Origin: Tubulanus polymorphus
Taxonomy: Eukaryota > Animalia > Nemertea
Length of the DNA stretch: 64,000 nucleotides
Direction: 5' to 3'
Assembly: GCF_964204645.1 (NCBI RefSeq)
Contig: NC_134031.1
Coordinates: forward strand, 6,944,001 to 7,008,000
Under the pieces are notes generated by a model. That model was not told the origin of the DNA. It saw only the letters and a list, made by a program, of their open reading frames with translations, and ran no database searches. A program made the translations under genes and the position numbers. This document shows positions 1 through 46,700 of this stretch, one piece after another. Within the stretch, counting starts at the first letter, position 1. Every line of letters starts with the position of its first letter.

Positions 1-1204
1 ACAAATATAGCTGCAAAGCAGCAAGTACAGGTTTTCTGCACAGCTGCATCATCAATGAAGGCTATTACTGCATCAAAATCAGCCTGGGTTCAGACATTTA
101 AGCAATATGTATGTTATTTGTCAAGGCATCAGTTAACTATTACATTGGTTTTCTTGTTGGGAAATGCTTCTTTTTGAATGAATGCTGAAAGCTGTGGGCC
201 AGGATGGAAATATTTGATATCAAAATCAGTCAGGGACTTTATATCTCTGGGAGAAACTAGTGAACTTTTCTTTGTGAACTAGTGAACGTTTTTAAGAGTA
301 ATTTTAATGTGTTTTTGCAGCCTAATTTTTATCTTAAACCGCACCAGTCTATAGATGTTCATTACTATTATCAAAAATACAGAAAGTGTATCCCATTATG
401 TATTTTGCTTTATGTATTTTTGCTATTATTATTAAGCTCTAGTAGTAGTAGTAGTAGAAGTAGTAGTCTTAAACCATACAGAAATAGATAGAAAAATGCA
501 ATGAGTTAAATCATATAACTAGATTCCAAATAAATACCCTTGTTGATCATTGGACAGAATAATAAAGGACCATGGGTCCAGTAGGATCAACTGAGTATAT
601 TTCATTTTTGAGCACAAAACTCGATTTATACTCAGATTTGCAGTTACATATCAAGTTGAAATCTTGGTGCACTGAATAGATTTAGGCATGTTCAACTTTG
701 ATGATATACATAGTAATGGGTTTCCCCATGACAATCATGGCAATCAATGCTATGTTCTATATGTAAGTTCTCAATACCGGTGGTAACGATGTCACTGGGA
801 AAGTCCTTCAGTTCCAACATTGAACTTGGATGCTGAAGGGCTTTCCCAGTCATGTCATTATCGAGAGATAAGGTCAAGCATCGATTAGTAGAATGGGGAA
901 AAATTCATAGAAATTTTGCACATTTCCTCCCAGTACTTCCAAATAGCTATTGATGAAACTTGCCATATCAATTCCATCACCACCTTTCAATTTCATCAAT
1001 TTCCCTCCTAATGACAAAATATCAGCGGTGTATATCCAGTGATTGCAATTTGTGCCAACAAGAGCCAACAGAAAGTTACTCTCAGAACCATTCCACAAAA
1101 ACTAACAAAAGAATATATGCAAATATCCAAAACGATCAAAACGAATTCCCTGAAACCAAAAACACGGAATCCTTTCGATCCTAGTAAATAATAGCTGTAC
1201 TTAC

Positions 1205-3497: not shown

Positions 3498-3782
3498 TTC
3501 TCTGTATTGCACATGTGGCATGATAAGACAAGGGGACCTACAAGGATTTATATAAAATTTCCAAGACGAAACGACAATTTTTATTTTTGATGGTTTTCCA
3601 ACTTATATTTCAAATCTTCAGGTTTTCCATAATAAATAATGAAATAATAAATTCTGGTAAAAGAAAAATGTGAATAAGTGTTGATTTCTTAATTTTTTTC
3701 AATTTCGTCGTTTCGCTTAGTTAGTTTGTGCTGTTGTCCTGGCCTCAGTCCACAGGTGCCAGCACCTCCAGTAGTTTTCAAA
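3498..3782. promoter_or_regulatory. Putative bidirectional promoter FUNDC1/TSC1
   Basis: The FUNDC1 ATG (-) is at 3497. A + strand exon ends at donor CAG|GTGAGG (3854), and TSC1 is the only downstream + gene found. The spacer is under 300 bp and AT-rich. Confidence 0.5.
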
Positions 3783-6187
3783 ATGGCAGCTGTTGACCCG
3801 ACGGAAATTTACTCTCACTTTACGGCCGATTTGCACATGGATTAAGATCATCAGGTGAGGTGTTATAGGTATCAGACAAACTACGAATCTGTTGTGCCTC
3901 GATTACAACAAAAAATAGACGGATATCTTAAGAGACAATGAAATGCCAGGCAAATTACTCGTCAGTCAAATTGGCTGACGAAGATTTCATACAAAAATGA
4001 CCTTCCCATTCCTGACTGTGGTTTGTGAAAATATCCGATTGTGAAACTAAACCACAGACAGGTTACTGACTACACTTGACCGAGTGCGCAGTTTAGATGA
4101 TGTCATTATTAGCCAATCAGACATCCTGTTTATTATAGCCAGGGTTTTCTGCGCTAGTTCTGTGAAATCCACCTCAGTCATTATAGGCCTACAACGAACG
4201 AGCAATTTGATTGGTGCCGCAAGTTTTCGTGCGACAAAGCTGCGCACCCAGTTCAGTGTGGCAGGGGTTCGTGCTGTGGCTGAGTTGAGTGTAGCAATGG
4301 CATGCCATATCAGGTTCAAATCCCGAGGGAGGACGCATTGCATTGGACCAGGTCCACGGACCACATGATATTGGACCAGGTTCAGGGTCAGGGACCAAGC
4401 GATTGATTTTCATTTTTTTGTCATTGACATTGCCAGGGCCCCAGGCCCAGGGGGATTGGCTGGCCTGGCGATTCATCGATTCAGACGATTTTAGGCAACA
4501 ATTCGTGTTTTTTCTTTTGGAAAGGCAGGGCCAGCCCTTCTCTTGCGAAATTACTCAAGTCAAAAGCTGGGACTTTGGTTTATTTATCATTTACCGCAAA
4601 ACAACTCAAGAGTTTCTTCTGCTGGATTATTTTATGAATCACGACTTCTTCAATAACTTCCACTTTCCAGTCAGTGACAGTTAGTTCGAACTGTCAAGCC
4701 AGCCACTACAACTGGCGTTATGTCGCGGGATATGTTGGTCGATTCCCTACAATGGAAACCGCTTGCTTCGGCTGGTGGTTCTTTAACTCGAGAGCAATTT
4801 CCCTCGTGTGGATGGCTTCCGCCAATTATATTTCGGATTCGAATCCCAAAATTTTGTTTGACCACAACCCTAGTTAATCTTTCTAAATGACGTTCTGTGA
4901 GATGAGGTTAAGTTTCAACGTTAATTTAGGTACACCATTTAATGCAATTTGAATCACATTTCCTTAAAACGAAGCTCGCGATGTCGCGTGTGAATTTCCA
5001 ATTTAGTATTAACCGAGCTTGTGACTTGGATCGATAATTGGCATTTTCTAGGTCAAGGTCGTCAGTATATGCCGCAGTACAGAGTTTTACAGTTAGTACA
5101 GGACATACTCTCTCACTCGAGACTCTACTCTACTGCTGCTGCCTACGCTCGAGTGGATGTATCTCGTGAAGTCTACGTGTTTCAGATCACTACCTCCAGA
5201 CTCCTCTCGCGTTCAGCAGGTACGTTTGCAGGTTGTCAAGCTTTTTATTTTGACGAAACCGGCCTATGACTGAAAACAGTTTTTAAAGTCCCGTCTCTGT
5301 GGTCGGTCCTCGAACTCGCTAGGTCGTCCGTCTCCAGCCTTCTTTTTTTCGGCGAATCCTCTGCCTGCCTGTTCTTCAATCAATTCAATTAATGAAATAA
5401 AAATCAACTGTCTGTTTAATTGTATTGTCTCTCATTTAGACAATTTTCTCTAAAGGTGTTTTCTTTGACCTTTCTGAGCAGAAATGGATGGAATTGGACG
5501 TGCATTTAGCAAAACTAAGTTTGTAAAGATAGGCCATTTCAAATTCAATAAATAGGGAGTGAATATTTTGCCGATTGATGCTGCATTATTTCAGAAAACA
5601 CCATTTTCCGACATTTATATATAGGGTTTATATGTAGAGTCTAAGATTATGACGATAAAATTATTTTAGTCTTAGGGTTACTTTCGGGTTTTGATAGGGG
5701 TAGGGTCCGTAGTGTCCAGACAGAGGGTTAGGGTCCGTTTTGTCCCTTTTTCAAGCTAGGCATAGGGTTTGTGTTGAGTGCTGTATGTAGTTAGGCCCTG
5801 AAAGTAAAACATTTGAATGGTTTCAACCAACATCGGTGGAAAGACATTGCACCAGCAATATGCTGGCACAGGTTCGACCACTGACCTCCCCGCTCTATTT
5901 TTTCTCCAACTCTGTTCGCCACACTTCCCTCGAATTTTTCGAAGTCGCGCACTACCGTGCACATGTGTTCAGGCAACAAATTAGGCAATCAGAATGAGTT
6001 GTCAGCAAAGTAGCGTTTAGGCCTAACGGGAATAATGCGGCGTTGGTCAGCAATCACCTGCTTAGACCGAGCAACTGTTAGAATTTGCATTGAAAACAAT
6101 GTCATGATCGTAAAAAGTTCCATTTGCAAGTATTATGCATCACCGAATGATTCAATTTAATTAATACACAATAAACCTAGTTCAGAT

Positions 6188-6549
6188 AACATCAGTGACT
6201 ACATAATGAGAATCCCACAGTAATGACAAAAAAACAAGGTCCGAAAATGTTTCCTCGAGCTGATAGTTGATTCAACGTTTCAACTATATCTTCAGGAATA
6301 CTGAGTTACAGCAGGACTCAGTTCCAGAGTTGTGAGTTAAAAATCACTCGAGTTGAAATTAGTCGAATTTCAATGTTTTAACTTCGAATCAAATCTTAAC
6401 TCACAACTGTGAAACTGGATCCAGAAAATTAGGCGAGGAAACATTCTCAGACTTTTTTGGAGGTTTTTCATTTTTATTATGGGATTCTCGTTATATTATC
6501 GTCATAACACAGATATAGTGTCTTATGAATGGTGAACATCAGTGACTAC
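6188..6549. mobile_element. Palindromic Penelope-like short element (degenerate hammerhead core), interrupted by a small MITE
   Basis: GAGAATCCCA...TGGGATTCTC arms, and CUGAAGA..GAAACGUU on the - strand near 6275-6296. Direct repeat AACATCAGTGACTAC at 6188-6202 and 6535-6549. MITE at ~6313-6423. Confidence 0.55.
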
Positions 6550-7193
6550 TTAGTCCTAACTCGAATACCGTATGACGGCACATATTTGAGATGGGCATTC
6601 TCCCGGAGTCTGCTTCGTTTTTTCTTCAAAGGTAAAGGCATCCCTATCTAGGCCTATTAGGCCTATAACATCGTAAATTATTCCTAGTCCATGATTTTAC
6701 ATCATTTTTTTAAACGAAATTGGGTTAGATTACTACAATAAAATGTACTGTTCCTGTGTTTATTAAAAAACTCTATGCGTGGTTTGTAAATTGTCCCGGC
6801 TGCCGTGTGGGCCTGCTTAAGTCTTAAGGCGTAAAGTATCCACTTTGTAGTTATTTGGTGCAGTCCAGCAAACTATCACAGCAAACTAAAGGAAAAAAAA
6901 CAAAAAGGAAACAGATAAATCCTTGGGCTATCTTTATATGTGTCTATATTTTCACGTGCAGTGTTTTGGAAAACCTCGCTTCTCGTTTCAGAGCAGTGTT
7001 ACGAGTTTTTAAGCAACCCGTACGGTCCCAAAGCGGGGCATCAGAAATGCGTCTCTGTTTTATGTGTATGTTATTCTGACAGACCGACACAGCGTGTCCC
7101 AGAAAAAGGTTATCAGTTGAAAGATTAATATATCAAATATAGTAATAATAATCAACCGACTTTTTCCCCCATCATCATTTGAGTGTTTACTAA

Positions 7194-7427
7194 TTAGTTA
7201 CCTAACGAGAGAAATCCGAAGAAATTCAGCCTAAAAATGAAAAGTTCTGTGGCAAAAAGATATATATTTCGAGCAACGTTTCGGCTAAAGCCATCATCAG
7301 GCGTGAATTTAGCCGAAGTAGTTACTTTTAGCCAAAACGTTGCTCGAAATATATATCTTTTTTACCATAGAACTTTTCATTTTTTGGCTGATTTATTGTG
7401 GGATTTCTCGACTAGTTAGTTACCTAA
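7194..7427. mobile_element. Palindromic Penelope-like short element with minimal hammerhead core and 12-bp TSD
   Basis: Inverted arms (GAGAAATCC...GGATTTCTC). The - strand reads CUGAUGA-UGGC-UUUA-GCC-GAAACGUU at 7300-7275. Flanking direct repeat TTAGTTACCTAA at 7194-7205 and 7416-7427. Confidence 0.65.
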
Positions 7428-8693
7428 TCGTTGGTAAGCTTTTCTTATCGGATTGGCTTGAAACTAAACCACAGACAGATTACTGGCTATGAATTGATTT
7501 TCAGGCTTGCCTCGTGAATGCATGACTGAGCAGTTCAGTTACGACATGACAAAACAGTCGGTTAACAAAATGTTGGGGCGACACAATCATTTATTGAGAC
7601 TAATGAATTTATACATCTGATGTGAAAAGATTTAACTACTTAGGATTACTCTATGATTACTCTATAATTTTTTTGATCGATCTAAACGAGATTTTACAGA
7701 ATTAAGTGGATCATTCATATCAGGATGTTGAATTTTCAATCTCGCAATCGATGGTGTTCGGTCGCATTTCAGTACAAGGAATACTTACCGTCGAGGCTAA
7801 CCATCCTGGATACTGTGCTCGATAAAAGAACTGACCGATATGTAAAGCAATGACGACCTGTGGGTAGGACTCAAAAAGAGTTGAATTGTCATTATGTGAT
7901 GCTGTTAATTACTGATTGGTGCTCGGTCATGCGTAAAACAAATGGCCTTAAGACCAAAGTAGAATCTAGTTAATAAACACCCAGAGGTAGATGGGGATAA
8001 AATGAAATTGATTATAATTTCTTACATAAACATAGTTATTTTCGATCTGACAACCTTTTCCTGGGGCACGCTGTAATAAGAATTTGTTTCTGCCATTTCG
8101 CGCTAGCATTCAAAGGGCCTGGCTGGTAACCTCATTGCCATGATCTAAGCCGGGTAGGTTTGGTACACCTAAACACCAGTGTTCTACGCATGCTGGAATT
8201 TTAAAGGGGTTGCATTCATTATATATGACATCGTGACTGCTGAAGTAGCAACAGAACAGAGAACGACGAGCTGCTACGCGGTACAGGGTGCTTTTGAAAA
8301 AAGCATAAAAATTTTTTGTTAAGCAAAAAAGTGGCGCAGCTTTGGCCGCTGCTGCCGTCCTCGTTCCAATGGCTCTGAGCAAGGCTTTCAATCCCTCAAA
8401 AAATACAGAAAATTAAACTTAATTCTGGTGTAATATCTTCTATTGCTGGTAGGGATAGCACAAATTTTACAGCGAGGTGGATGTAAAGATGAAAGGGGTG
8501 ACCGCCCTTCTAAGACCTGTTGCACTTGAGAACACTGAAACACTAACACTGCAGTTGCTCCGGCATTTTACGTATCTAAAAAGAAATTGTTCATAAAAAT
8601 TAATGAAACGAATAGACGATCCTTTATTCTTGTTCGATTCCACGATCAGCAGAAAGTTATTCTTACGTGCTGGTCGACCAGTTGATGCCGTGC

Positions 8694-9949
8694 TTTTTTA
8701 GCCCACTTTATTGCGTTCACTTTTCGTCCGTCGTCCGTTCGTCCGTCCGTCCGTAGACGGAATCCAGTTATTTTGGGAAGTTTTGAAGACGCTTCAAGGT
8801 AACGTCTTGATATTTGGGTTACACATGTATCTACCCTAGACACATCTTCAGCCCAAAAACTGCCCCTGTCAGAATCAAGATGGCCGACTGGCAGCCATTG
8901 TTGTTCGCCAAAATCAGCACTTTTTACACATTTTTGAACTTTTTGAGGGAAATTTTGAAGACGCTTCGATCAATTACATTGATCTTTCGGATATATGTGA
9001 ATCCCCCCAGGGCCCATCAACATAACAAAAATTGGGTCGATCGGACTCAAGATGGCCGTCCTATGACCTTTTTAGTGCCCAAAAATGTTAATTTTGGCCC
9101 AAATTCTGAGTCCTGTAGCTTCCTACTGGTTAATCATTTCTCATTGCAATTTGTGATGGGTATTCTTTGGAAAGGGATGTTTTATACCTGAGACAGGTAT
9201 TTTTCATCAGCCAATTATGACGCAATTGGCGGCCATCTTGGTGTCACCAGTACTCATTCGTAAGTGGGACAAAGTTTTTCCACATAATATTGATACCTAA
9301 GCATATTTTGCTACCGCAATCAATTAGAAAGTTGTAGCTCATAACGTGTTCTATGATTGTGGTGAGTTTCATGGTAATTGGATTTTGTATATGGCCACCA
9401 GGGGGCGTTGAATAATACAATATCTTAGCATTTCTTTATTATATTCGTACCTATGCATATTTTGTAACCACAATCAATTGCAAAGTTGTAGCTCATGACA
9501 TCATCTATGATTGTTGCGAGTTTTAAGGACATAAGTTTATCTATATGGTCACCAGGGGGCGTTGAATTGTAGAATAACTTAGTATTTCCTTATTATATTG
9601 GTACCTAGGCATATTTTGTTACCATGATCAATTGCGAAGTTGTAGTTCATGACATGTTCTATGATTGTGGTGAGTTTCGAAGTCATTGGGTTTTGAATAT
9701 GGTCACCAGGGGGCGTTGAATAGTAGAATGACTTAGAATTTCCGTATTAAATTGGTAACGAGGCATATTTTGTTATCACAATCAATTACAAAATCGTAGC
9801 TGCTGACAGGTTCTATGATTGTGGTGAGTTTCAAGGTCATTGGTTTTTGTAAATGGTCACCAGGGGGGCGTTGAATGTTGAAATTGTTAGATTGTTGAGC
9901 ATTTGAAACCACTTCCCAAGTGGGCATGGAGTCCCTGGACCCCTAGTTT
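8694..9949 (+). mobile_element. Non-autonomous Helentron/HINE (DINE-1-like) element with internal tandem array
   Basis: T-run start, then subterminal IR TAGCCCACTT (~8699) pairing with AAGTGGGC (~9918). Also a (GTCC)n microsatellite at 8725-8755, a 154-bp array, and a 3' stem-loop GGAGTCCCTGGACCCC followed by TAGTTT. Confidence 0.75.
9287..9895 (+). repeat. 154-bp tandem array (~4 units) with a CTCF-like motif in each unit
   Basis: ATGG(C/T)CACCAGGGGGCG starts at 9391, 9545, 9699 and 9853, an exact 154-bp period. Confidence 0.9.
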
Positions 9950-30922: not shown

Positions 30923-33668
30923 TGATTGCCAGGGTGGCAATATTGAATAGCAGATCAGCTAGGCCTACCAGTCATCCGTAGTGGGTACATTGTATGAGAT
31001 ATCTCATAGTAAGCGGCAAACCTTTGTTAAAACCCTTTCAGTGCGTCTATACCGCAGTACATCTTATAAATCGGAAGATGGCAGCACCTGTCAAACATAG
31101 CTAAATATAAGCAACTAATAATACATTGCACCGCAGTGTAGACACACTATAGTTGTATGCCCGTTATTTAACACACTAGGATGAAATTTTAAGAGTTAAC
31201 GAACTATATCCAGCATTTCTGGAATTAATTAGTTGGCACTGAAAGGGTTAAAAAAGCTAGAAGAAAATATCATTAAGGCATTTTGCATGTAGAATATGGT
31301 TCCATATAAGCATGTACAGAATTGATATCATAAAATGATGGATTATTGAATGTATGCCAAAGAATTGAATTGATATAGTCGATCATGTACAGGTATTATA
31401 TCATTATTGCATGAGGGCAGAGGAGATCGACGGTTTTATTATGGATTGTTCTTGCAAATCTCTAAAACTTATACAAGCGCGAGGATGTAGATTTATAATC
31501 AATCATCTGAATTTAGTAATTATTACCTTACAGTATTAATAGGCAAAATATATTTATTTACGTAAGTGATTAAACCCCCAAAGAGCCGTAGTCATTGACG
31601 GCAAATTCGATTTAAAAGTTTATTTGAAATTTCATGCGTGTACTTCAGTATTTGGATGACTTATAACTTGTAAGAGAATTTATACGAATGTAAATTGAGT
31701 AATAAGTTATCAGGGTGTTAGCTGCCTAAAAATTCATGAGAAATTTGAATAGCTATAATTGTTCTCCCTCAGCGGGGACTCATACTGAGAGGCATCATGG
31801 CTCTGCTTCTAAGAGAGCGTTAAAATAGTATGTACAATTTGTACCAAAATTGCACAAGATCGTTCAAGGGGGAGGGGGGTCTTTGAATGCTCCCTAATGG
31901 AACACTGACCAGAAAATTGCGTGGACCCAATCAGATTTACCTTTACGCATTTCAGTTAACATAGTCGTAATACCATCCACCCCCGGCACGGATTCGAACC
32001 TGATGGCATTGAGACTCGCCAAGGTACAAAACCCTGCAACACTAGCCCGTGTTCACAGGTACATACGCAGCTTAGATGATGTGATTGTTAAGCAATCAGA
32101 AATCCCGGTTTATTCCCAGCCTGGGTTTTCGATTTATAGTTTATCCGTGAAATTTGCCTCAGCAATTATACGAGCAATCCAGGGTTTGATCTAAGGAATA
32201 AAAGCCTTTTGCAAGACGAGTGATGATGATAACCTACTCGCCCAAATGAGAATATACTTGTCTCAGGCAATGGGACAAGTGCTTAGATCGGACCCCATCT
32301 GATTGATGCTGAAAGTTTTTGTGCAGCAAACCTGCGCACCCGGTCTAGTGTGGCAGGGTTTTGTGCTGTGGTGGCTAAATCTTACGATACCATCAGGTTT
32401 GAATCCCTACCGGGGCGGCTGTAGTGATATAGGCATTTCTTTGGGCTCGGTTGCCTTTTAGCCAGTAAAATCGACGCCATTTCTGATTGGCTGACAATGA
32501 GGTTAATTCATAATCTGAATCTGGAATGCTAATAATGCACTCGTGTCCACTAGGGTAGGGTTTCGTACCATGTACAGTCTTTCGAAGACATCTCGTTTGA
32601 ATCCCTGTAGAACGAAGAAGGCTTTGGATTCGGTTTCGATAACCTCAAAATATTGCAAAATATTGGAAATGAATGTAACCTGCTTTGGTGAGTTGGTTTT
32701 GTACGTCACTGCCCGCATGGCCATTCGTGTAAAAATCTATTTTAACATCGATTATTGAATCCTTGAAATAGGTTCGCTTTGTAAAATGTTTGCTAATTAT
32801 CAACCATTGTTCGTGTGTTATTCTAGGGGTTTAAAAAAAAATTTCATTGACCAATGGCTCATGCAAATTATTGTCATTACTGGAATCGATGGCAAATTGT
32901 GACGATGATAAATACATTATTTACAAATTGAAAATTCAATAGAGAAATAAATTGTCTTATTATTTATAAGAAATTTCGTCTGGTTTATTTTCTCACTAGC
33001 TTTGTCTATAGTTTTCGAGGCATTGCAGCGTCGAGACCGCAGTAAGACTGGCATTGTACTGACCAGTACCGAGTGGAGACAAGTTAACTGACCAGTACAG
33101 TGACAAGTTAGCTGGCCAGATTGAATGGGATAGGAGAGAAGTGCTTGACTAAGCAGCACCAAATGTCTAAATATATTCCTAAACTGACCAGTACTTCCAG
33201 GGGTGGATCCAGGAGCAGACTTTTGACAGGAGCACTAAGAAATGAAAAACGGTAGGGCAAGTTAAGTATCCACACAGCCAAAACAAGGGTCTGAAATTTG
33301 AAATTTCAGTGCATTTTCATACAATTTCTAGGCACCTGAGGGACAATAAAGAGTATAAGCTAAATCTTGTGCTGAAGACTGCCGTCTCATTAGTTGCAGG
33401 AGCACGTGCTCATTGTGCCCTGTCTGGATCTGCCGCTGTATATCTGGCATTTTTCATTGAAACTGATTATTTCTGAGGAGTATGAAGGGTCAAGACAACA
33501 AATTGATACCTATGCGCATCATTACTCTGGAGTAGAGAATCGGTTTAACTGACTGGAATCTATTTGGATGTAGGTGAGCAGTGCTCCAAGTTGAGATAAC
33601 AATCTACTCAAGACAACGACTTGTACTGTAAATGATGATGACTTTATTGTTGAATAATTTTCAATATG

Positions 33669-36600
33669 CTACGAAGACGAATTCGAAGGTTTTTGTTGTT
33701 GTTTAAGTTGTGGATAATAATCTGCATAATCGAAACGTTTAAATGGAAGAGGCATGTCCAAATATCCGTAGTCGTACGCTTGTTCTATCGCTATTTGTAA
33801 ATTCATCAGCTGTTTTCGACACACTCCTGAAAACAGAAAGTACATACAAGCTGAAATTCAAATTTCCCCAAAATTTTTCAGTCATAGATACTAGAGCAAC
33901 ATCCATGGAAACCACTGGTGATCTTATTCAGCCCAGAACTTCAAACTTTTTCAATTTATTGGCCATGGAATATAGTCTGACAATCTAAAAATTATATGAT
34001 ATATGCCCATGCGACATCGACAGGAACTTTGGTAACCTGTACCTGCGGAGATCGGGGACTATAATCGGACGCGAATAAAATATGTAGTTTATTTACAAGG
34101 GTTACAAATTTCTGATCTATTAGGTGACAGTCTTGTGCCCTACTAACTGGGCCATTGTGACTGCATGTATGGTAGTACTATGCTGAAAATTGTTTTGATG
34201 CAAAGATAGTCCATGATTAAAATTCCTGCTCACTGACTGGCTGAAATTTTGTTTGCCTCCATTTGGCCCCCTTATAAAAACAGCAGAACCCACTTAATTC
34301 GGATCCCTTGGGACCAACAACATTCATCCAGTTTATGGGATATGCAGATTGAAAGTAATTTTCTTGCATATAAATGAACAAATGGACTGAAAATATTGTC
34401 CAAATTAGACCAAAATCCGGATTAAGCGCGTTTGACTATTTTCCCAGCTGTTAATAACCGTGTCACCAGTTATACAATGACTACCACACCAAGTTTCTCA
34501 GCCCATTATTTCTCCACAGCAACACCATTCGGTACATAGTTTCGTATTAATATATAGATAACTGACCTGTTTTTAGGGGTGATAATTCCAAACCGCTATG
34601 AGGATCGATAAACTGCTTCAAAAGATTCACATTCTGAAACGAGAGAGCGAACATTTCAATACTACGAACGAAATCATCACGGAAAGAAAACTATTTCGTA
34701 TCGATTTTTTCTTTCATGAGAAACTTACCGCAGGGTGAAGTACCAGATATTCATCTCTACAAATAGGACATGGGTTTCCGCAGATCTTGTCGCCTCTCTG
34801 TAATTATAGTGTCTTCATGGTTAAAAGCCTTCGGCTGAATAAAGCATTTTAAGCCTGCTTTCATTATTCGAATTGAGCCCTTTGCCGATGAAAGTACAGT
34901 AGAACTCGCTTAAAATTCGGGTCACCTGGGACTGGAAAATCTTGTCCGAATCAAATTTGAATTATGCGCTCTCATTTGAAACGAAACGGCCTAGTGGAGA
35001 TTGGAATTTTAGTCCGAAATAAGTAAAAATCTGATTAAAAATCGATCCGAATTAAACGAGTTATAACTACGGGCCTATATAGCATTTTTGCGAACTTACA
35101 ATGCATTGTTTACGCGTCTTCTTTGGTTGATATTGCCCTTTGAAATTTCGTTTGTACTTCGTCCAAACCGGTTCATCTCCGTACACCTCGCTGTAGGCTG
35201 AAATACAGAGATAAATCATCAGCTTCACAGGTCAGCATTCAGTCAGCTGATATGGCTTTGCTGTTTCATTATTCTTCATTTATTTAATTACCCCATTTCT
35301 ACGGGTACGCTTTAGGGTTCAAATCTAAAAACAGCTATGCAACTTAGTAGCTGCTGGGCCATAGAATATCCATACTAAATTTTGGTAATGAACTGATAAG
35401 GATTAGTAGCAATTCGCAGGAATACGGGCCCCACCCAGCAATTGGATCAGGCCTGTACGCAGACTACTTTTGGTGGGTGCGAATTCAGATATGGTGGGTC
35501 TTATTTGACAGCGGAGCCAGCAATAGTGAGCGCCACAGGCGTCCTCTCCTGAGAAAATTTGAAGCGTTTTAGAGACATTTTCAGCCAATGTTAGTGAATA
35601 TTTCAAAAAATCCATCAAGACTAGATTGTAGTCTCTAGGAATTTTTGATATTTCATATATTGAAGTCACTGAAACACTAATGCGTAATCCAATAAATTTT
35701 TTCTAACAAAAATAGTGGAACTCAGGATCTTGTAGGGCGGTGTGTTCGCACCCAACGCACACCCCGAGTATGGGCCTGTGGATAAGGAATGCAGGCCACT
35801 GGGGCTATTCAGGCAGAAGTTCGTACAGTAGCAAGTCTAACGGCGCCATCAGCTTCGAATCCCAGCTGAGGACAAGTTGCTACTGGTTTCTTCTTCATTG
35901 ATAGTAGAATTGAACCCTAATATGAAATCTGAATAAGAAAGCCATAAACACAGCTGAATTCTCAAAAAAAGATGCCTATAAGCCGAGTAGATAGTTACCT
36001 GTCGAAGCCAGATATCTTTGACTAGTTTCTAATGAATGATTCGGTCGAGGATTTATTGGCGTTTGATCATCTGCGTTGCTACTCTCTTCAGTTTCCTCTG
36101 CCTCGTTATAACGACGATTAGCGACTGAAAAATGTCTCTACGGATAGAGTGAGAAAAGAAATTTATGAAATTAAGCTGCGGTAAGTCTAGTTAAGGCCAA
36201 AATCGAGCTACGTCTACACTTGCTTCTGGTACCCGGGTTACGCGTCTACGGTACGCTCGAAACACAGGTTCAAGGCAGAGTCTTCCGCAAAACCCGTGTT
36301 TTATAGAAACCCTCTTGGAAAAGAAGGGTTCATACATTCCGCATTGAACCCGCCTTCCCGTAAAACTCCGCATTTCCTCTAGTGTAGATGGTAAACCTAT
36401 TCAATTCAGCGTTCAGGGCACCACAATTGACCATGAACTTGAACTACATATGTGGATTCTTACTACCGAAACTGCCTTACGTGTAGATGCTACTCGCTGC
36501 GAACGCGGGTTTTCGTCGAACCCCCGTACATCGAAACGCCGGTTTTCGTCCAACCCCTGTACATCGAAACCCAGGTTCAACGAGCTAGTGTACACGTGGT

Positions 36601-39600
36601 TTCACTCTGCTCTTTAATGATACCCGAGATTTCAGGGTCTAGTGTCTATTTCAACTTGTTTGCACAGACGTTGACATAACTCGGTACATTTTGGGTGTAC
36701 AAACCGGATATCGATATAACGACCAGTACGGATGCGTAGCTGAACTAAAACCTCGATTTCTAATCCATGTTACACTACATGTATATAGAAGGATTGCCAA
36801 GTCTTCGTTTTACCGGTACTGGAGTTGAACTCTAATTGCTTATGGCAACTGACATCTGTGAAAACAAGCGAAGCGAAATGGGACATTTCCAGTACACAAT
36901 CATTTGTCCCGTGCTAAAATTTGGCACGGGCCAAGCCTGGGTCAAAAACGCTTGTGTGATCGCGCCTATGGTAACTGGGCTCAGCATTACTTTTTCATAT
37001 GTAACAGAACATGAATCAATAGCGAATAGATCCTTATAGCGCAAAAACCGACAACAATAAGTAGAATATATGGATCTTTCCGTATGTATTTATTATCATC
37101 AATAATTTATGTATAAAAAGAATTTGAATAATTATTTAGTGAAAGACTTGAAACAATGGAAAACGTTCTTGTGTAAAATTTGCTGCGTTTGAATTAAACC
37201 GATGAGAGAGAGAGCAGGTTTAAAAACGAATCATCACGGGTTTCACCGGGAATTTCTGTAGGGAGGTCGGCATAGGCAATTAATAGCCAAAAGGTCAGTC
37301 GAACAGCATAGGGGTACGGGGTCCTCGCCTTAGAAGATTTTGATTCTTTAAAAGTGTTTTCGAGCAATTGGAACATTTTTTAGATGTGAAATTGTTTACT
37401 TCACTTACTGGTACATCTCAGTCAGAAAGAAAATTTGATGACGAACGAAGGGAACTTAGTTTTGGAAACGGGGATTAATCAGACCCACCAAACCCCCCCT
37501 CCCCAGCGACGCCCTTGATCATAAAGAGAGATAACGCAGATCGCATCGGTCAAGACCTCAAAATCTCATAAAAACTCAAGATTCTTTACACATCCTCCCT
37601 CGGCAGGGATTCGAACCTGATGGTATCGCTTGACTAGGACCATCTAGACTAGGTATCTAGACCAGGACGTGCACAGGTACATGTTTCACAGGCACCTGCT
37701 GCAGGCAAACTTGTCCCATAGATCGAATTGCCTGTTAGCCTATAAAATCGCTGAAGAAAATTTCACGGATTAAACAGAAAAATCCGCACTAAAAATATAA
37801 CAGGATTTCTGATTGGCTAATAATGACATCACATAAGCTGCGCACTCGGTTTAGTGTGGCAGGGGTTCATGCCGTGGAGTCTGGACACCGCCATAGGTTG
37901 GAATCCCTGCCAGGGAGGATGGATTAACAAGGTCTCACTGTTTTCAACGGGTGAAATTGAAGTTAAATCGTGCAGCACATTCTAATTATTCAGTTTACAC
38001 AACTACATATAAATAGATTTTTCAGTTTTTCATCAGCAATAATTTTCAATCATGCAAAAATACAAGTTAAGTAACATTACACAGCGCACAAACCACTGTG
38101 CGTCGGTAGCACATGCATGGCTTCCATTTGAGACCAGTCTAAGACCATCTTAGTTCTATAACCAACCTAACGATCTAAGACCAATCTCAAATTCGAGACC
38201 AAATTTGCGCTTAACAATTGTGCAACTGAACCCTTAAGTTATATTGTCATAGAAATTAACCCCTATCAATTGTTTGGTTTCCATTTTCCTAGGGTCTTAA
38301 TTAATTGCACAAAATTCATGTTTTTCACTCTGCTTAATGGTTTGTTTGAATGAAGACCAACAATTAACAGCGAGGACATACATTCGAAACCCTCGGGTGT
38401 TACCATAAACACATACGTCCAAACCCCTAAGGGATCATTCATTTATTGCGTACGCATAAAATTTGAATTTTTCAACCCCTCCTCCCCGTTTGTACGCAAA
38501 ATAATCGGCCATTTTTTCATATACATTAAGCATTACAGTACGCAATTGCTCTGACCCCTCCCCCTCCCCTAATGCGTACGTAATAGGCTATATGAATGAC
38601 CCCTTAGAGAATGACCATATTAAATGTACACCCAAAACCTTGGAGGGGTTTAAGACCAAGTTCACCTTTAATCTTTAAATACATTTCCGCTCACACATTG
38701 GAGCTATCGTTCCATAGATTACTACAAGGTATTTACATTAATCTATTCTTCATGTAGTAGAAGTAGTATTCATGCAATGCGGCGAAAGCAGATAACTACA
38801 ATAAATACAGGTTTAGCCGAATACTGGTATGACTTTTAAAGTACAATGGATTAAACACAAACGAAGCAATACCAATCTATTGCAAATCGTAATGAACAAA
38901 TTTTTTTCCTACCACCAACTAGCAAATATAACCAGTCATGCAAGTCCAATAAAACTGGCCCATAATTGCAGAAACCCTTAAATTCGTTTTTCAAAATACA
39001 GTCAAACCCCGATATACCGCTCTCCCATTTACCCCCACCCCTGCCTACTGCCAGGTTGATCTCAACATAAATACACAGTAAAACACCCCCGATATACCGC
39101 CATACTCTCTATACCGCCAAAATCGTTCTGCACCGACGTGGTCCGTATATCGGGGTTGACTGTACTTTCAAGAAGCACAAATCTTAATGAATGAATTTCT
39201 TCCTTCCACCATAACTCGAAAATATAACCAGTAACGTCCCACAAAACTGGCCCATAATTGCAGAAAGCCTATAGCCTAAATTCGCTTTTATAACTTTTTT
39301 TAAGAATTCTAGAATTGAGCAGGAAACGCAATCTTGAAAACTGGATTCAACGAATCGAAAATAATATCGCCGCGATTCGAAGTTCATTCATTCGTTCATC
39401 GTTCTCTGAAGCCAATCTTTGTATTTTTTCTGCAGTCGTTTCACCGTCGACTGTTTCGACTTTTCAAACTGTTTACAAAATTCCAGTTCGTCGTTGAACA
39501 AATCGAGCGCCGAACGTTCGACTTTGCTCTTTTTCGAACACCCTCCTCCGCCACCTCCTCCGGCGAGAATGGTCTCTGTGTCAACGAACGCCTTATTCTC

Positions 39601-42600
39601 GCACGCGAAATTCGCGAGGTGAAACGCGTCCACGGCGTCGGGATGATTCCGTAAATACGTGACGACGAATCGCCGATGGCACCAGATCGCCTCGTGGTCG
39701 GGAAACCGTCGCACGAGCTCCGTGCTCATCGCCAGTTCGTCGACTAAGATGCGCTTCATCTCGTCATCGTCGCCGAGCTGATCGTCGTTGCACAACAGGT
39801 TGATCAGAAACTGGCGGAAATGGAAGCCGCTGTGGTCAGAGATGTGCGCGCGCACCCATTCCTTCGTCGTTTCGAGTTCGTCGAGCAGAACGTCGACGTC
39901 GTTGCCCGTTAAGTGTTGTATCGTCCAGATTCGATGACTCCACGCGTTGTAGTTGCTGGCGTATTTATCGGCGGCTGTCGAACAGATTTCGAATTCGGCG
40001 AGCACGTGCGATTTAACGACGTCCGGGGTCGCGATCCGGGACCGCTGCTGTTGCTGCTGCGAGGAGTCCACGACGCCAATTTCGATCGATATCGACTCCA
40101 ATTTCACCTCGGTCGATAAACGCGCGAAATAATCTTTCACCGCTGCGTCCGTCGACATCCACCGCTCGAGCAGCCATTTACGATGGCCGAACGTTTCCGA
40201 ACTCTTCGGATGTTTGCCGAGTATCAACGCGCACAGTTTCAATTCGACGTCAACCGTCGCGAAATCGCGATCGATCTGCTCCTTGCGAATGTTCCACACG
40301 GTCGCCACGTCCGGGTTGATCAGTAAAACCGCGCGCGACAAGCTGTTGATCTCGTCCGGTTCGACGTCGCGCGACCGCGCGTCTTTACGACGCCACGACA
40401 TCAGCTTGTCGTACGCGTACGCGTAGAGAATTTTCACGCACCACATTTCGAGGCCGATTTTGCGTTCGATCTTCACCAGCGGACTGCAGTTCTGCACCGG
40501 CTCGAGGACGGGGACGTAGTCGTACTCGTCTATGTCGGGGTCCTGGCGAAACGCTGCGTCCAGGTCGGCGAGAATTCGAGAACCACGCGAATCGACCATG
40601 ATCTAGGCTATTTCTCTCTCGGTCTCTCTTAAAACCCGTCCTGGAAATAGAGCATCATTCAACCATTAAAGCTTTATATCATAAACAATAGAAATCTTTT
40701 CTGAAGATATCGATACACATAAAATAAAATCAGTTCAGATGAAGCATTACGTAATAGCATTAGAAGCAGCTTTTAAGACACTATTTTTGTTTATGAAATA
40801 AAGTTTGTCTTTAATGGTTGGATGCCCCGTCCAGGGTCCAAAGGGGACTGATTGTGAAACTTGTACAAAATTCATCAAATTTCTTGAACTTTTCAACACA
40901 GAAAATTACATTGGTGCATTTCAGTGCAGTAGTGCCCCTAATATTGCCTTTTTGGACATCAAAGCGTTTCCAAATCAAAGTCCATCCAAATTTGCCACTG
41001 GATCCGTTCCTGCCTCAACATTGAAAATTGTGCAACGGTCAATGATAATCCTGTCAAATTTGTGACGCAAACACATTTCAAACAACAACAAATTCCTGTC
41101 GACCATACTCCTACCTGATGTAGGTCTTATAGGATGACTGGCAGTTGACCTAATACATCGTTTTAAAATCCAATCTACACTGTATTCAAGGATCGCAAAA
41201 TGGTCTTCATTGAAAGGGGTTGAATAAGAAAAAGTGACTGCATGATTTAAACTGACTGAGCTACACTACCTGATGTGCTCTCAAATCAAGTTGAAATAGA
41301 CGTTAGACAGTTGCACTGTGGCATGTGTGACTGTCAGATTTACGAGTACCTTCGAAAAAATTGGCAATATTTGTGACTATCTTTATGTAATCTATGTTTT
41401 TGTAGGCCTATCTGTGATATATACTAGTATTTGAAATACTGTCTATAGCATGATTTAACAGATGTTCGCCGAGCTGGCTATGAGAACTACTATACTTGTA
41501 CTTGATCCGGTTCTGTCACCAGTGCCACTACGAGTATACTCATGTCTGATTCTTTCGATTCTCTCATAGATTCTCTGGCACACGGGAATGATACACTGTC
41601 TGAGTGGCTATTTTCCACCCATTATTTACAAGGAAGTGGTTACTTTGCCAATGCGGCATTATTTTAATAAATGCTATTTTGCCAATGGCTATATAGGCCT
41701 ATAATAAGATATACTAATAAAATATAACAATAAAATCATTATATTGGGTTAAGGATTAGGGTTTCGATAGGGTTAGGGTCTAGAGGGTCCAGAGGGTTAG
41801 GAATAGAGGGGATAGGGATAGGGTAAGGGCAAGGTGAGGCTGTAAGTAGTGAAAACTTACAGCTGGATGGCATGAACCTCGCTGATCAAGTGGGAAGACG
41901 TTGCGCTAGCAATCTGCTGGTCCGGGATCGAATCCCGCTCTATGCTCCCATTTGCTCTTACTCTGTTCTCCACACTTTCCTTGAATTTTCTAAGGCACGC
42001 ACCACAGTGCACATGCGCAGCGTCAATTAGCAAATCAGAACGAGCCATTGGCATAATAGCGTAAACAGGAATAATACTGCATTGGCAAAATATCACCTGC
42101 CTATTTGCAAAATATCCTTTTCTTGGATTGTGTGGACTAAATGAAACCGAATATCCGTTAGTCGAAACTATAGTCCGGAAATAGTCGACCACGGGATTCG
42201 ATTAAGCACGGTCGCTACAGTTCGGACCTAGGTTCAAGATGGCCGACAATGTGAAATACGTTACAACTGAACTAGTGTGTGTTAGGTTATTAGTTCCGAC
42301 CACTAGTCGACTAGCTACGAAAACCGAAGTTGGTCCTGGCTTCTTCCGGCATCCGACCTTACTACACATACAACAATTTTTACAATGTAAACATCATCTT
42401 ATACAGTTCACACAACTCTAGCAAGGCTCGATGATTATGAATACTAGGTACAATAAATTGTGCAGCTGCAGATGTGGACTTTTTCCCAGATCCGACTTTA
42501 TCTCTATTCAGTACGAGTCCGACCGAACGAAGAAGTTTAAAAGACGTTCGCCCAGACTAGTTTTAGAGGCGATTTTCTACCGGTCGGACGAAGATTCACC

Positions 42601-42763
42601 GAATATCTACATATAAACACAAAATAATTTTCGGATTCATAAATATTGATTTACTTACTAGTTGTGAATCCGCAGTCAGATACAAGCTAGCTTTTACGGG
42701 TTTCGATATATTGGTGGTTAAACGCGTAAATTTCGTGCAAATTTCTCGAACGATCGACGCCAT
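33669..42763 (-). CDS. MRPS18B: Mitochondrial small-subunit ribosomal protein S18b (mS40), ~211 aa, 6 exons
   Basis: Exons 42763-42659, 36137-35999, 35197-35100, 34797-34729, 34633-34567, 33826-33669 (636 nt, phase consistent). The N-terminus is a basic transit-like peptide (MASIVREICTKFTRLTT...). The core is [73 protein letters not shown] on - at 33648-33643. Not in the ORF track because the exons are short. Confidence 0.93.
37592..37922. mobile_element. MITE-like element with tRNA-like long terminal inverted repeats
   Basis: ATCCTCCCTCGGCAGGGATTCGAACC...GGTTGGAATCCCTGCCAGGGGAGGAT. Family copies at ~3152-3225, ~4075-4333, ~14150-14433, ~27596-27909, ~31975-32417 and ~48229-48368. Confidence 0.75.
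38430..38606. mobile_element. PIF/Harbinger-type MITE
   Basis: TIR GGGATCATTCATTTATT(A/G)CGTACGCA with TAA/TTA flanks. Copies at ~46022-46131, ~48555-48705, ~49597-49765, ~50777-51116 and ~51130-51262. Confidence 0.7.
38999..39162. mobile_element. Tc1/mariner-type MITE (TA-CAGTCAA...TTGACTG-TA)
   Basis: TIR CAGTCAAACCCC(C)GATATAC with TA flanks. A second copy at ~50853-51027 is nested in a Harbinger-type MITE. Confidence 0.7.
39388..40599 (-). CDS. PTAR1: Protein prenyltransferase alpha subunit repeat-containing protein 1 (GGTase-III alpha); single coding exon nested in MRPS18B intron 1
   Basis: Uninterrupted 403-aa ORF with a PTAR1-like N-terminus (AFRQDPDIDE..SPLVKIERKIGLEMWCVK). PFTA repeats: LLINPDVATVWNIRK, KHPKSSETFGHRKWLL, YASNYNAWSHRIW, HISDHSGFHFRQFL, FPDHEAIWCHRR. 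A splice acceptor CTCTATTTCCAG lies 41 nt upstream of the ATG (exon start 40640). Confidence 0.93.
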   Translation of the reverse strand: MVDSRGSRILADLDAAFRQDPDIDEYDYVPVLEPVQNCSPLVKIERKIGLEMWCVKILYAYAYDKLMSWRRKDARSRDVEPDEINSLSRAVLLINPDVATVWNIRKEQIDRDFATVDVELKLCALILGKHPKSSETFGHRKWLLERWMSTDAAVKDYFARLSTEVKLESISIEIGVVDSSQQQQQRSRIATPDVVKSHVLAEFEICSTAADKYASNYNAWSHRIWTIQHLTGNDVDVLLDELETTKEWVRAHISDHSGFHFRQFLINLLCNDDQLGDDDEMKRILVDELAMSTELVRRFPDHEAIWCHRRFVVTYLRNHPDAVDAFHLANFACENKAFVDTETILAGGGGGGGCSKKSKVERSALDLFNDELEFCKQFEKSKQSTVKRLQKKYKDWLQRTMNE

Positions 42764-43799
42764 TTTTCTCCAATCACCTGCTAGGGCAGGAATTTCTCTT
42801 TGATTGGTTTCGAATCCCTTTAATTTTTTTCTGACACTGTGAAAGTACTGAAAAAAATACTGAATGAAAATACAACACGAGTTACGAATCGATGAGTGAA
42901 TGCCGTGCTTTCACCGGAAAAGCTGACACAGTAAATGTGTTAAAATCAGTTCCATAAACCTGTAGTCAGTAACCTGTCTGTGGTTTCACAGTCATATTTT
43001 CAAAAGCCCATCCGATTATAAAAAGCTTGGCGCGACTAATAGGCCACGGTAACTAACTAATATACCTGGGCCCAGAAATCGGAAATATTAATGGGTAGGG
43101 CCTGAGTGCGGAATTCCGGCTACGGCACTGGATCCATACTTTCCCTGATCCAACTTACTCACTGTAAAATTCTTTAAAGTTTTATAAAGTTTAGCGAAGT
43201 TTTGTGAGTTTATTAGAACTTGCAGGCAATCCGTCCAATGGCACAGTCAGAGTAAAACAAACAATTTTACAAATTTCTACCAGTAATAACACAAGGAATT
43301 TATTTTTTAAAAAATAAATTTTCTTTTATTTAGAAAAAAAGCATATACGTTAATCCGCTACATAATCCTAAAATTAGATTGGCATAAAAGTTTCCAAGTC
43401 CAGGCCGGCGGCCGGGAAACTCACTGTCCTGTTTAGTTTCACGATCGGATATTTTCACAAGCCCATCCGATTATAAAAAGCTCAACGAAACTATCCCCAA
43501 AACTGTGCCCTTAAAAATCAGTGACTGTGTGGTCTCAAACAGTGGATCTCCACCCCAATCGGGAAGCATACCTATACACGGGAACTGACATTATTATACG
43601 GCCCCTAGCCTTGAGAATAATGACGTCATCGGGTGGCGTGCCGGTATGCGGTAATTTATGCGAGAAGGTAGATAGTGCGGAAGGCGAGGCGAATTTTACT
43701 CCTCGGCTAAATCACTTAAAACAGCCCCTCGACGCTTTCGTATCCGCCTGAAATTTGTGTCAACGAATACAAAATCGGATACTGATTTATTTATTGCAG
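42764..43799. promoter_or_regulatory. Bidirectional promoter MRPS18B(/PTAR1)-PPP1R10 with a perfect CRE palindrome
   Basis: MRPS18B ATG (-) at 42763. Probable + strand 5'UTR exon at 43800-44045 (donor GGC|GTAAGT). TGACGTCA at 43621-43628, and the 43600-44160 stretch is CpG-rich. Confidence 0.6.
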
Positions 43800-46700
43800 A
43801 TATCGAGCGTTACGGCGACGCGGAATCGCTGGAATTTCAGCTGAGAAATTGTTCAACTCGGGAAAATTGAGAGAAACGTAGATTACTCGCGCACGACGCC
43901 ATATTGTCTTCATCCCCGCCGCGGCGACCAACCTACGAGCGGGTCATCGACGTTGACGACGGATTTTTAGAAATTTAGCCCCTTGTTTTTCTAATAATCC
44001 CCACAGATTTATAAATAGGAAGGCATAAACTCTGTTTTGATGGGCGTAAGTGTCTTATTTAGTCGTGTACATTCGTTTTAAATTGATATATTGGATACAT
44101 TTTTGTTGCAGCGTGTCGGGCGAGTTCAATTGGTCGTAGAGGGGTGGCCTTCGGCGAGGCTATAATGAATTCTGTGTTTTCTATTAGTTTTATCTCTGTA
44201 TTTTTGTCGTCGATTCTTTGAATAATGTTTTCATTTTATTCCATGGATTAGTTTCAAATATACATTCTTATAAATATGTAGTTATTTGTAATGTATATCC
44301 TCAATATTTCACAATTAGTGCTTTCGTTCACAATTAGTGCCATTTGGTTTTTGCTCCCCACCTGTCATAAGTGGTGGTTTTAAGGTTGATAAAATTGTGT
44401 AGGTACTCTAAAAATTGTCTTGTTAATTTTTTTCGCCCCATAATCTATGCTATTGGCATCATGCCATTTTGAACGTGCTGTAGAATATTTCTATTAGTGC
44501 CACGTAGTGAGACAAGAATATGCTGCCATCTATTGGAGTTTTAATGTACCACTAGGCATTGCTCTGGGGGTCATCTCAGGAGTTCAAAACAATTGTTAAG
44601 CCGGAGACCCCTCTAAACAGCAAACTTAATGGTAAAGTGCCTACGATTTTCAGAGCAATACCAAAAAGTCATCAATCTGTGAACTTAACCAATTGAATTT
44701 TTGATAATGTGGCGCAAATTATTGTATTGAAAAATTAATGGGCAATGAAATAGAATTTTAAGAAATATGATAAACTTATACTTGACTTGACCTTAGGACA
44801 GCTAAGTGTTGTCTAACACTTTCAATTTTCAAATTTATCTAGTGACTGTTGACCGACCCCTACCTATTTTACGATGCCCCTTGTACATGGTTCATGTTGC
44901 CAGCGTTCAAACAACTAATATTACTAGAATAATTGCCAATATGTGAAACTACTCAAAATCTTCCCATTTCTCAGTATTTTTTCGATCAAATTCATCCACA
45001 ATTTAATAACTCTCAGTTGTCCTTGCACTAAATTGGATTACAAAATTCTACTTGAGCCATTGGTGACAGTTTGTATGTTTGTACACTACATGTCACCAAA
45101 ATCTTCCATTGTGTTCATGGTTTGCGTGGTTCCCACTTGACATTTGAGTACATTAGTCATGACATTTATTTAGCAGTCAAGGATATAATAGTGCATGCAT
45201 AATGCCGACTAGAATTAGATAGCTGGTAGATGAGAAATTATGAGTATAAGGTTTACAGTAAGCAAATTCATACAGTGTAACTCGTTAAATTTGGATTGGA
45301 TTTAATAATATTAAGATTTCGGACTAAAATTCAAGTCCCCTCTATATTTTTTCAGTTCAAATGAGAGCTCATAATTCAGATTTCGTTAAAGTTTGATTTA
45401 GCGAGTTCACTATCGTGTGTTTGGTGAGCCAAAAATTCTTGAATTTTTGTTCGAACCAATCGCTGAGACTAGGATATATCCATCAATAGTTGGTTTCTTT
45501 GACATATAATTGACTTCATTGACATGTTCTTTATTCATCGAAGTATTTATATTAGGCATTACTTGTCTGACATTCGTGAAATACAAAATCGAAATTTTAT
45601 ACTGATTAATATGACCTAGATGATTGAATTCAGATTTAGATCAGTTGATCAGGGTTAAAAGAACTGTACATTCATATTCATGTGCCTTACATTTGCTACT
45701 TTCGTTCAGATAACACTAAAAATTAATGCGCTTTCTAGCCTTGTATTTCCTTGTGGTAGGGTCTGATGGTTCGTGATGAAAATTCAGCTGAATACATATG
45801 CGATAGTCTAATTCATTTGTACGGCGGTCAGTTGCAATAGTCTGGGCAATTTCAGACATTGTGACTCGGGTGTATTTAAGAATTATAGTCCATTTCTTGA
45901 TACATGTAGTACTGTAAATCCAGCTTAATGATCATCAAATGAGGGTATTAGTTACGTTGGAACCTCATCAAACTTACACACCTAAAATTTCGTGCATAAT
46001 CCGACAATGTTGATATTATCCTAGGGTCATCCGTTTATTATGTAAACATTAGGGGAGGAGTGATGGTAGATTTCGGTACAGAGGGGGGGTTAAGAAATTC
46101 AAGCTTCATGCGTACGTAATAAATGATCCCCAAATGGATAAAACTAACTATTGGTTATCACAAACAGATTTGCTGGTCCTCTGAAATTTGTTGTTTCATT
46201 GTGTAGGCATTGATGTTCAAGATTTCTTTTAAATCAGTAATCAATTTCATCCCAAATGATCCGGTTTAAGTAATTGCCTTGTAGTTGAACTGGTGCTTCA
46301 GATCTAGGCCTACGAGGAGGACACGGAAATATTTCAAACATCAGAATTAGTTGGTCGTATCAGATATGAGCTGACGTATTTGAGAACTCGCTCGATATGG
46401 ATTTTTCAATCCAGATTTCACTCAACGTAATTATGTTGAAATATTTGGTCCATTTTAACCTGGAACCATAGATACTAATTCATAATTCGGGTTTTAGGCT
46501 AAAAAAAATTGATACCTTGTTTCTCCACTCTGCTGAGCTTAAATGTTGACCCGGCCGGCCGCCTATCTACCCTATACATTACTTTTTTAAAAAATCGTGA
46601 TCAATTTTACCATAACAGACCCGGCCGCTATAGAAATGAACTGTTAATAAATTTTATCATAGTTTACAAAACCTGGCCGCTGCGGAGAAACAAGGTATAA

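Follow-up and report, generated by a model that had tools for sequence, protein, structure and literature searches.

In a scenario described as "hitchhiking", intronic retrogenes use the promoter and the 5′ exons of their host gene (PMC5408686). [quoted passage not shown] Orphan retrogenes are also known; among the cases cited in PMC5408686 are those of Ciomborowska et al. 2013 and the intronless genes of tunicates, which reflect a mass replacement. At the level of translation, very short leaders promote leaky scanning (PMC13219423). Here we analyzed a stretch of 64,000 nucleotides (the window) from the nemertean Tubulanus polymorphus (RefSeq assembly GCF_964204645.1, contig NC_134031.1, positions 6,944,001 to 7,008,000 of the forward strand), in which a complete, intronless PTAR1 gene is nested in the first intron of MRPS18B, the gene of the mitoribosomal protein mS40. 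All features of the locus lie on the reverse (−) strand, and positions are those of the window. As it stands, PTAR1 is a well-supported orphan retrogene whose 5′ end has several candidate partners, and the first exon of MRPS18B is the one that we tentatively favor.

The locus resembles the hitchhiking retrogenes in that an apparently processed, sense-oriented copy occupies a 5′ intron of a housekeeping gene unrelated to it, with a splice acceptor just upstream of the retrogene open reading frame (ORF); the host promoter would drive the copy and the host keeps working. It differs in that the junction to PTAR1 is here a predicted one, the first host exon is coding and would form an upstream ORF (uORF) and not a plain 5′ untranslated region (UTR), the organism belongs to the nemerteans, and the gene has no other copy than the retrocopy. 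With the orphan retrogenes it shares a single intronless copy, multi-exonic orthologues, a new neighborhood and signs of purifying selection; in contrast to them, it bears no recognizable trace of a parent gene, of a poly(A) tail or of a target-site duplication, and the event is old. A first AUG that follows a leader of about 13 nucleotides, and a subsequent AUG that starts the second cistron, recall the bicistronic or uORF-gated leaky-scanning mRNAs and those of the TISU type (translation initiator of short 5′ UTR; PMC13219423); however, the PTAR1 case is purely predicted, and its TISU-like context would oppose leakiness. Exon sharing by intronic retrogenes being already known, the PTAR1/MRPS18B pair is to be seen as a further instance and not as a new principle.

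An intronless PTAR1 as an orphan retrogene

The nested ORF (39388-40599) encodes 403 residues followed by a stop codon and contains four PPTA repeats (Pfam PF01239, E value 4e-29, above the cut-off). Besides the window's own protein, 119 matches were listed, and all the informatively named ones are PTAR1. The best match is PTAR1 of Lineus longissimus, with 46% identity over the full length, and vertebrate PTAR1 entries show full-length similarity with 31-38% identity. On these matches the ORF is the PTAR1 orthologue, distinct from FNTA and RABGGTA. The alignment with the Lineus protein runs from residue 3 against residue 4 to the end, so that the start codon is conserved between the two proteins and ATG 40599 is the true start, without need of an upstream coding exon. 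Like its vertebrate counterparts, the Tubulanus protein carries the PPTA repeats, and it differs from them by the lack of coding introns in its gene and by poly-Gln and poly-Gly insertions. Vertebrate PTAR1 is the alpha subunit of GGTase-III (PMC9141697). A PTAR1 active in this way would form the enzyme together with RABGGTB and prenylate Ykt6 and FBXL2. A search of the protein collection for the RNA contig, made with the N-terminal 151 residues (40147-40599), returned nothing, and the full-length protein is represented there only by this genome's own entry.

The PTAR1 protein matches the genome once (268 Mb in 77 contigs), within the limits that the completeness of the assembly sets to the absence of a second copy. 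Two other PPTA loci are present, on C2 and C3; their matches are spread over several reading frames, as expected of split genes. In Lineus, the only outgroup compared, PTAR1 is covered by seven tblastn blocks, corresponding to seven coding exons and six coding introns, none of which is found in the Tubulanus copy. The Lineus gene is flanked by a WD40 gene and pescadillo, while in the present genome pescadillo lies on a different chromosome (C2) from PTAR1 (C7). Loss of the introns in situ was rejected as less likely, since the Lineus neighbors are located elsewhere.

The PTAR1 frame has been maintained. Among eight single-nucleotide polymorphisms from other individuals, seven are synonymous changes at third positions and the remaining one replaces I by V; in addition, a 15-nucleotide insertion preserves the frame. 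Together these changes indicate that the ORF is under purifying selection. The only candidate for a remnant poly(A) tail is a weak A-run (aaaaaaagttataaaag) about 90 nucleotides past the stop codon, and on the two sides of PTAR1 no direct repeat of more than 7 nucleotides was found that could represent a target-site duplication. Since neither mark survives, the retrocopy event is old. The GC content at third codon positions (GC3) is 0.72 in PTAR1, as compared with 0.36 in MRPS18B at the same locus and 0.45 in Lineus PTAR1, the GC content of the window being 0.39; GC enrichment is known for mRNAs expressed without coding introns. These data strongly support PTAR1 as a functional orphan retrogene, the sole PTAR1 of this genome. 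The earlier note on this DNA, made from the letters alone, had recognized PTAR1 on the same strand as MRPS18B and within its first intron, and had proposed a retrocopy. Identity and nesting are both borne out, and the retrocopy agrees with a multi-exon ancestor and a new neighborhood. For the second, intron-containing PTAR1 that the note suggested looking for, the genome gave no evidence beyond the single match described above.

The acceptor at 40640 and the first exon of MRPS18B

A pyrimidine tract ending in a CAG acceptor (ctctatttccag, 40641-40652) precedes the PTAR1 frame and would place the start of the exon at 40640, leaving a 5′ leader at 40600-40640 (the sequence across the acceptor reads ctctatttccag/GACGGGTTTTAAG). 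Acceptors of this quality occur about 0.53 times per kb and strand in the window, which gives a chance of about 3% of finding one within 60 nucleotides of an ATG. Read in phase 0 from 40640, the leader gives GAC GGG TTT TAA (DGF-stop, with the TAA at 40631-40629), then 29 nucleotides and the PTAR1 start in ATCATGG. Exon 1 of MRPS18B (42659-42763) opens with ATG 42763 in the context AAAATGG, comprises 35 codons and ends in phase 0 at the donor GTAAGT (42653-42658); its peptide, MASIVREICTKFTRLTTNISKPVKASLYLTADSQL, is basic and resembles a presequence. Joined to 40640, this exon would form a 38-codon uORF ending 29 nucleotides before the PTAR1 ATG. A scan of the sequence revealed no further ATG in exon 1 or in 40640-40600. 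The earlier note had derived these elements of the acceptor, the uORF and the spacer, and we find them at the same positions.

Use of the acceptor was evaluated with sequence runs whose assembled contigs were aligned to 36900-42899. Run X1 is DNA-like, with a flat depth of 25-33 and one contig covering 39109-40939. Runs X2 and X3 come from one sample of a second individual (S2). X2 is RNA-like: its depth is zero upstream of about 42776, 212.8 over exon 1, about 10 in single-copy intron, 27-35 over the PTAR1 ORF and 38-73 downstream to 37140, and it falls at the donor of exon 1 from about 213 to about 10. X3 is DNA-like, with a contig (42491-42894) running straight through the promoter and the donor. 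A further run (X5, labeled RNA?, 2015) contained nothing that fits PTAR1 and was uninformative. PTAR1 is thus expressed in the RNA-like run X2, at a depth of 27-35.

In X2, contig record 13 (526 letters) follows the DNA with its letters 32-526, which correspond to 40639-40145, and its remaining 31 letters are not colinear. Contig record 20 of X3, from the same sample, is colinear up to 40662. A contig break within 1 nucleotide of such an acceptor has a chance of 0.16%. Because the RNA-like contig departs from the DNA exactly at this site while the DNA-like one stays colinear, we consider that the acceptor at 40640 is probably used. The fitted piece ends at 40639, one letter before the first G of the exon. 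If a letter that fits on both sides is given to the right-hand piece, this offset would place the partner within 36900-42899, with a G directly after it in the manner of a GT donor; 31 letters absent from the stretch, as with a spliced leader, should not produce it. Depending as it does on this convention for contig pieces, the offset helps a little. The length of the overhang, about k−1 for an assumed word length of 31, shows only that the end of the partner branches, and exon 1, a private exon or a fold-back would produce it alike. We rejected the low depth of X3 over exon 1 as evidence against exon sharing: X3 is DNA-like, its contig crosses the promoter, and its excess over the ORF may reflect a GC bias.

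[quoted passage not shown] This suggests that MRPS18B RNA starts near 42776, with a leader of about 13 nucleotides. Such a leader, with a start codon surrounded by AAAATGGCG, resembles the TISU arrangement. In mammals, many genes that encode mitochondrial proteins have this arrangement. Neither a possible acceptor at 42777 nor an exon 0 further upstream was retained, the depth of X2 being zero across 42777-42899.

From these elements we propose, tentatively, the following course of events. A processed copy of a multi-exon PTAR1 would have inserted, in the sense direction, into intron 1 of MRPS18B; the parent gene would have been lost and the copy would have taken over its function. The large PTAR1 exon, from 40640 to about 37070, would then act as an alternative 3′-terminal exon of the MRPS18B transcription unit. 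Its acceptor would most likely be joined to the heavily used GTAAGT of exon 1, so that the host promoter drives the mRNA, and a private promoter with a TATA box and an initiator may work alongside. Exon 1 is favored as the partner because upstream of 40640 no donor other than that of exon 1 is demonstrably active and because no ATG lies between the two start codons; that it is the main 5′ partner is conceivable, at somewhat less than an even chance. In such an mRNA the mS40 start codon would open the 38-codon uORF and the PTAR1 AUG would be the next one. How PTAR1 is translated is a matter of speculation between the two routes, reinitiation and leaky scanning. Leaky scanning would be the main route since the leader of about 13 nucleotides makes the mS40 AUG cap-proximal; reinitiation, which is inefficient when a uORF is this long and the spacer this short, is less likely. 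With the uORF stop in the last exon, decay dependent on exon junctions should not be triggered. Taken as a whole, this explanation, an orphan retrogene hitchhiking on the first exon of its host, is preferred with caution and falls a little short of being probable.

A locus of common design was found in the same genome. TAF1A is present there as a single-copy intronless ORF with a GC3 of 0.62 (L005 1426-2878; G000:C10), about 310 nucleotides downstream of a phase-0 host exon on the same strand. This exon translates to DFLIDGEFLRSSLQEYIENSGKST, which we take to be the N-terminal (NLE/ubiquitin-like) domain of WDR12, and ends with ...FDFLIDGEFLRSSLQEYIENSGKST followed by the donor gtaagc. An acceptor, tgtatcttgcag, lies 36 nucleotides before the TAF1A ATG, and the 33-nucleotide leader is open and in frame (L005 2876-3300), so that a fusion of the WDR12 N-terminal domain with TAF1A, or a long upstream ORF, would be formally possible. 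PTAR1 and TAF1A thus have in common that an intronless, GC3-rich ORF lies in an intron of a same-strand host and has an acceptor shortly upstream of its ATG, which suggests that acceptors at the 5′ edge of these retrogene ORFs are not accidents.

If exon sharing is true, the promoter, the splicing choice and the start-codon stringency of a mitoribosomal gene would all bear on an essential prenylation factor, and the locus would offer a clean natural case of a retrocopy in a 5′ intron becoming the sole functional gene. Together with TAF1A in WDR12, PTAR1 hints that retrocopies may often have replaced housekeeping genes in this lineage of nemerteans, as in tunicates. In its most extended form, the proposal is that the 118-nucleotide exon 1 doubles as the mitochondrial presequence exon of mS40 and as the uORF leader of the sole PTAR1, that the proportion of the two mRNAs depends on the choice of acceptor or poly(A) site in intron 1 and the output of PTAR1 protein on cap-proximal leaky scanning, and that the locus is one instance of a lineage-wide habit in which housekeeping genes (PTAR1 in MRPS18B, TAF1A in WDR12) are replaced by GC3-rich retrocopies exonized as alternative terminal exons of same-strand hosts. 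Taken jointly, all this is doubtful. The locus is also of value for annotation, gene predictors tending to fuse or to miss the nested PTAR1.

Rival accounts of the PTAR1 5′ end

Several observations weigh against a PTAR1 mRNA that begins with exon 1 of MRPS18B. The joint between 42659 and 40640 is itself a predicted one, the contig break showing the acceptor side only, and the kinds of the runs, RNA-like or DNA-like, were judged from depth and not from run records. As a template for an essential protein, an mRNA with a TISU-like AAAATGG context, a 38-codon uORF and a 29-nucleotide spacer would be poor, and the context of the mS40 start codon (AAAATGGCG) opposes leakiness. Typically, mRNAs that are expressed without splicing have a high GC3. 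Furthermore, the model of hitchhiking followed by scanning transfers poorly to TAF1A, where the host would contribute three coding exons. Finally, a TATAAA box at 40678-40673 is followed by the initiator CTATTTC (consensus YYANWYY) with its A at 40648, an ideal spacing that is improbable by chance and that would give an mRNA free of the uORF; the 9 extra colinear nucleotides of such an mRNA would be clipped by the assembler as a tip, so that the contigs are compatible with TATA-started transcripts, even as the majority. The earlier note had found no obvious separate first exon for PTAR1, and in this it overlooked the TATAAA with its initiator.

According to the account built on this candidate core promoter, PTAR1 would be an independent nested gene: transcription would start at about 40648 and yield an unspliced mRNA with a 49-nucleotide leader and no uORF, the acceptor-like sequence would consist mostly of initiator pyrimidines, and spliced forms, if any, would be minor by-products of host splicing. 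The A of the initiator lies exactly 30 nucleotides downstream of the TATAAA, and an initiator at +28 to +33 accompanies just 5 of the 74 TATAAA sequences of the window. The GC3 of 0.72, against 0.36 in the host, suits an mRNA made without splicing, and the logic of translation favors a uORF-free leader. However, the RNA-like contig of X2 leaves colinearity after 40639 into 31 other letters, exactly at AG/G. In addition, in the second individual neither X2 nor X3 contains anything that matches the 88 nucleotides of 40663-40750 with at least 90% identity, the flanks fitting well. This individual probably carries a structural or hypervariable allele there; the stretch with the TATA box is thus variable or absent in it, hence not conserved within the species, and yet PTAR1 is covered at 27-35. 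Transcription from this promoter as the main source of PTAR1 mRNA is, on balance, unlikely, although it deserves serious consideration. The TATA box and initiator overlap the pyrimidine tract of the acceptor, and these 30 nucleotides could have two functions, that of a core promoter and that of a 3′ splice site.

A private, non-coding first exon with its own promoter inside 40641-42658, probably derived from a repeat and spliced to 40640 independently of exon 1, would equally account for the apparent use of the acceptor. The contigs of X2 leave gaps at 41078-41169 and 41692-42309 where such an exon could lie; the best-scoring donor-like site, CATCAG/GTAGGAGT at 41115, falls into the first of them, and in the bin 40900-41099 the ratio of RNA-like to DNA-like depth is about 10 times that of other repeats. 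On the other hand, the X2 contigs 40751-41077, 41170-41691 and 42310-42630 are unbroken, so that no donor is in use inside them, and they stay at background depth: between 40751 and 42630 no single-copy X2 contig rises above the background of about 10. The only promoter motifs found in the region are two TATATA. We therefore regard a private exon as quite improbable. Still less credible, to the point of being very improbable, is a spliced leader added in trans at 40640, by which PTAR1 would be resolved from the host pre-mRNA in the operon-like or nested-gene fashion of trans-splicing animals. PTAR1 and TAF1A, both intronless and nested on the strand of their host, each have an acceptor 36-41 nucleotides before the ATG, which does recall trans-splice sites, and the 31-letter overhang of about k−1 (for k=31) is what a widely shared upstream sequence would leave. 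However, our literature search found no report of spliced-leader trans-splicing in nemerteans, the fitted piece should extend to 40640 and not to 40639 if the 31 letters came from outside the stretch, and upstream of about 42776 no coverage that would correspond to an MRPS18B outron is seen. Hitchhiking on exon 1 thus remains the explanation that we prefer.

Host exons, PTAR1 3′ region and repeats

The six exons of MRPS18B were read from the sequence, and their total of 636 nucleotides remains open, as checked by a script, to the stop codon TAG at 33671-33669. Exon 2 (35999-36137, 139 nucleotides) starts at 36137 after ccgtag and is in frame with exon 1. The exons were searched singly, against the PDB and Pfam. 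Exon 3 (35100-35197) matches residues 64-95 of human mS40 (E value 4.5e-7), and exon 4 (34729-34797), with its CxxC zinc knuckle, matches residues 96-113 (E value 3.7e-5). Because the two matches adjoin in the solved protein, they identify the host gene as MRPS18B and confirm the splice between exons 3 and 4. Exon 5 (34567-34633) and exon 6 (33669-33826) were assigned from the frame. Exon 6 alone gave no match in the PDB, and the single exons gave no significant match in Pfam, the pieces being too short. The host identification of the earlier note, together with its positions for exon 1, the phase-0 GTAAGT and the in-frame joining to 36137, agrees with these results. An alternative donor at 42599 was rejected, being out of frame with exon 2. 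Some extra depth of X2 is seen just below the donor of exon 1. Nothing credible was detected by Rfam over 33000-44000, and hence no intronic small nucleolar RNA that might cause it; the extra depth is better explained by a 30-letter overlap of a contig joining exons 1 and 2.

Downstream of the PTAR1 stop codon, 37070-39387 probably represents a long 3′ UTR with repeat insertions. The single-copy X2 contigs of this region, 38569-39106 (depth 38.5), 37802-38160 (73) and 37140-37620 (60.5), stand above the intron background of about 10, and the first canonical AATAAA outside a repeat lies at 37094-37089, which would mark the putative poly(A) site. Within this 3′ UTR, one repeat element is flanked by a 35-nucleotide direct repeat (38944-38978 and 39236-39270, 91%). 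In the coding region, the low-complexity parts of PTAR1 are polymorphic in length (near 39550 and at 39989-40144), the 15-nucleotide in-frame insertion lying in the poly-Gly tract, and around the poly-Gln tract (QQQQQ, near 40040-40060) the X2 and X3 contigs, from the second sample, are interrupted.

From exon 1 down to the PTAR1 acceptor (40641-42658), intron 1 is composed mostly of interspersed repeats (40900-42500) and retains about 420 nucleotides of single-copy sequence; the depth of X1 reaches 270-8900 in these repeats, as compared with about 30 for single-copy DNA. ARAGORN detected no tRNA over 36000-43000. High-copy repeats at 37500-38700, 38900-39300 and 40900-42500 fill much of intron 1, with a DNA-like depth of up to about 300 times that of single-copy sequence, and include inverted-repeat elements resembling miniature inverted-repeat transposable elements. 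The distal part of the intron carries a tandem duplication of 33 nucleotides (91%) at 36502-36567.

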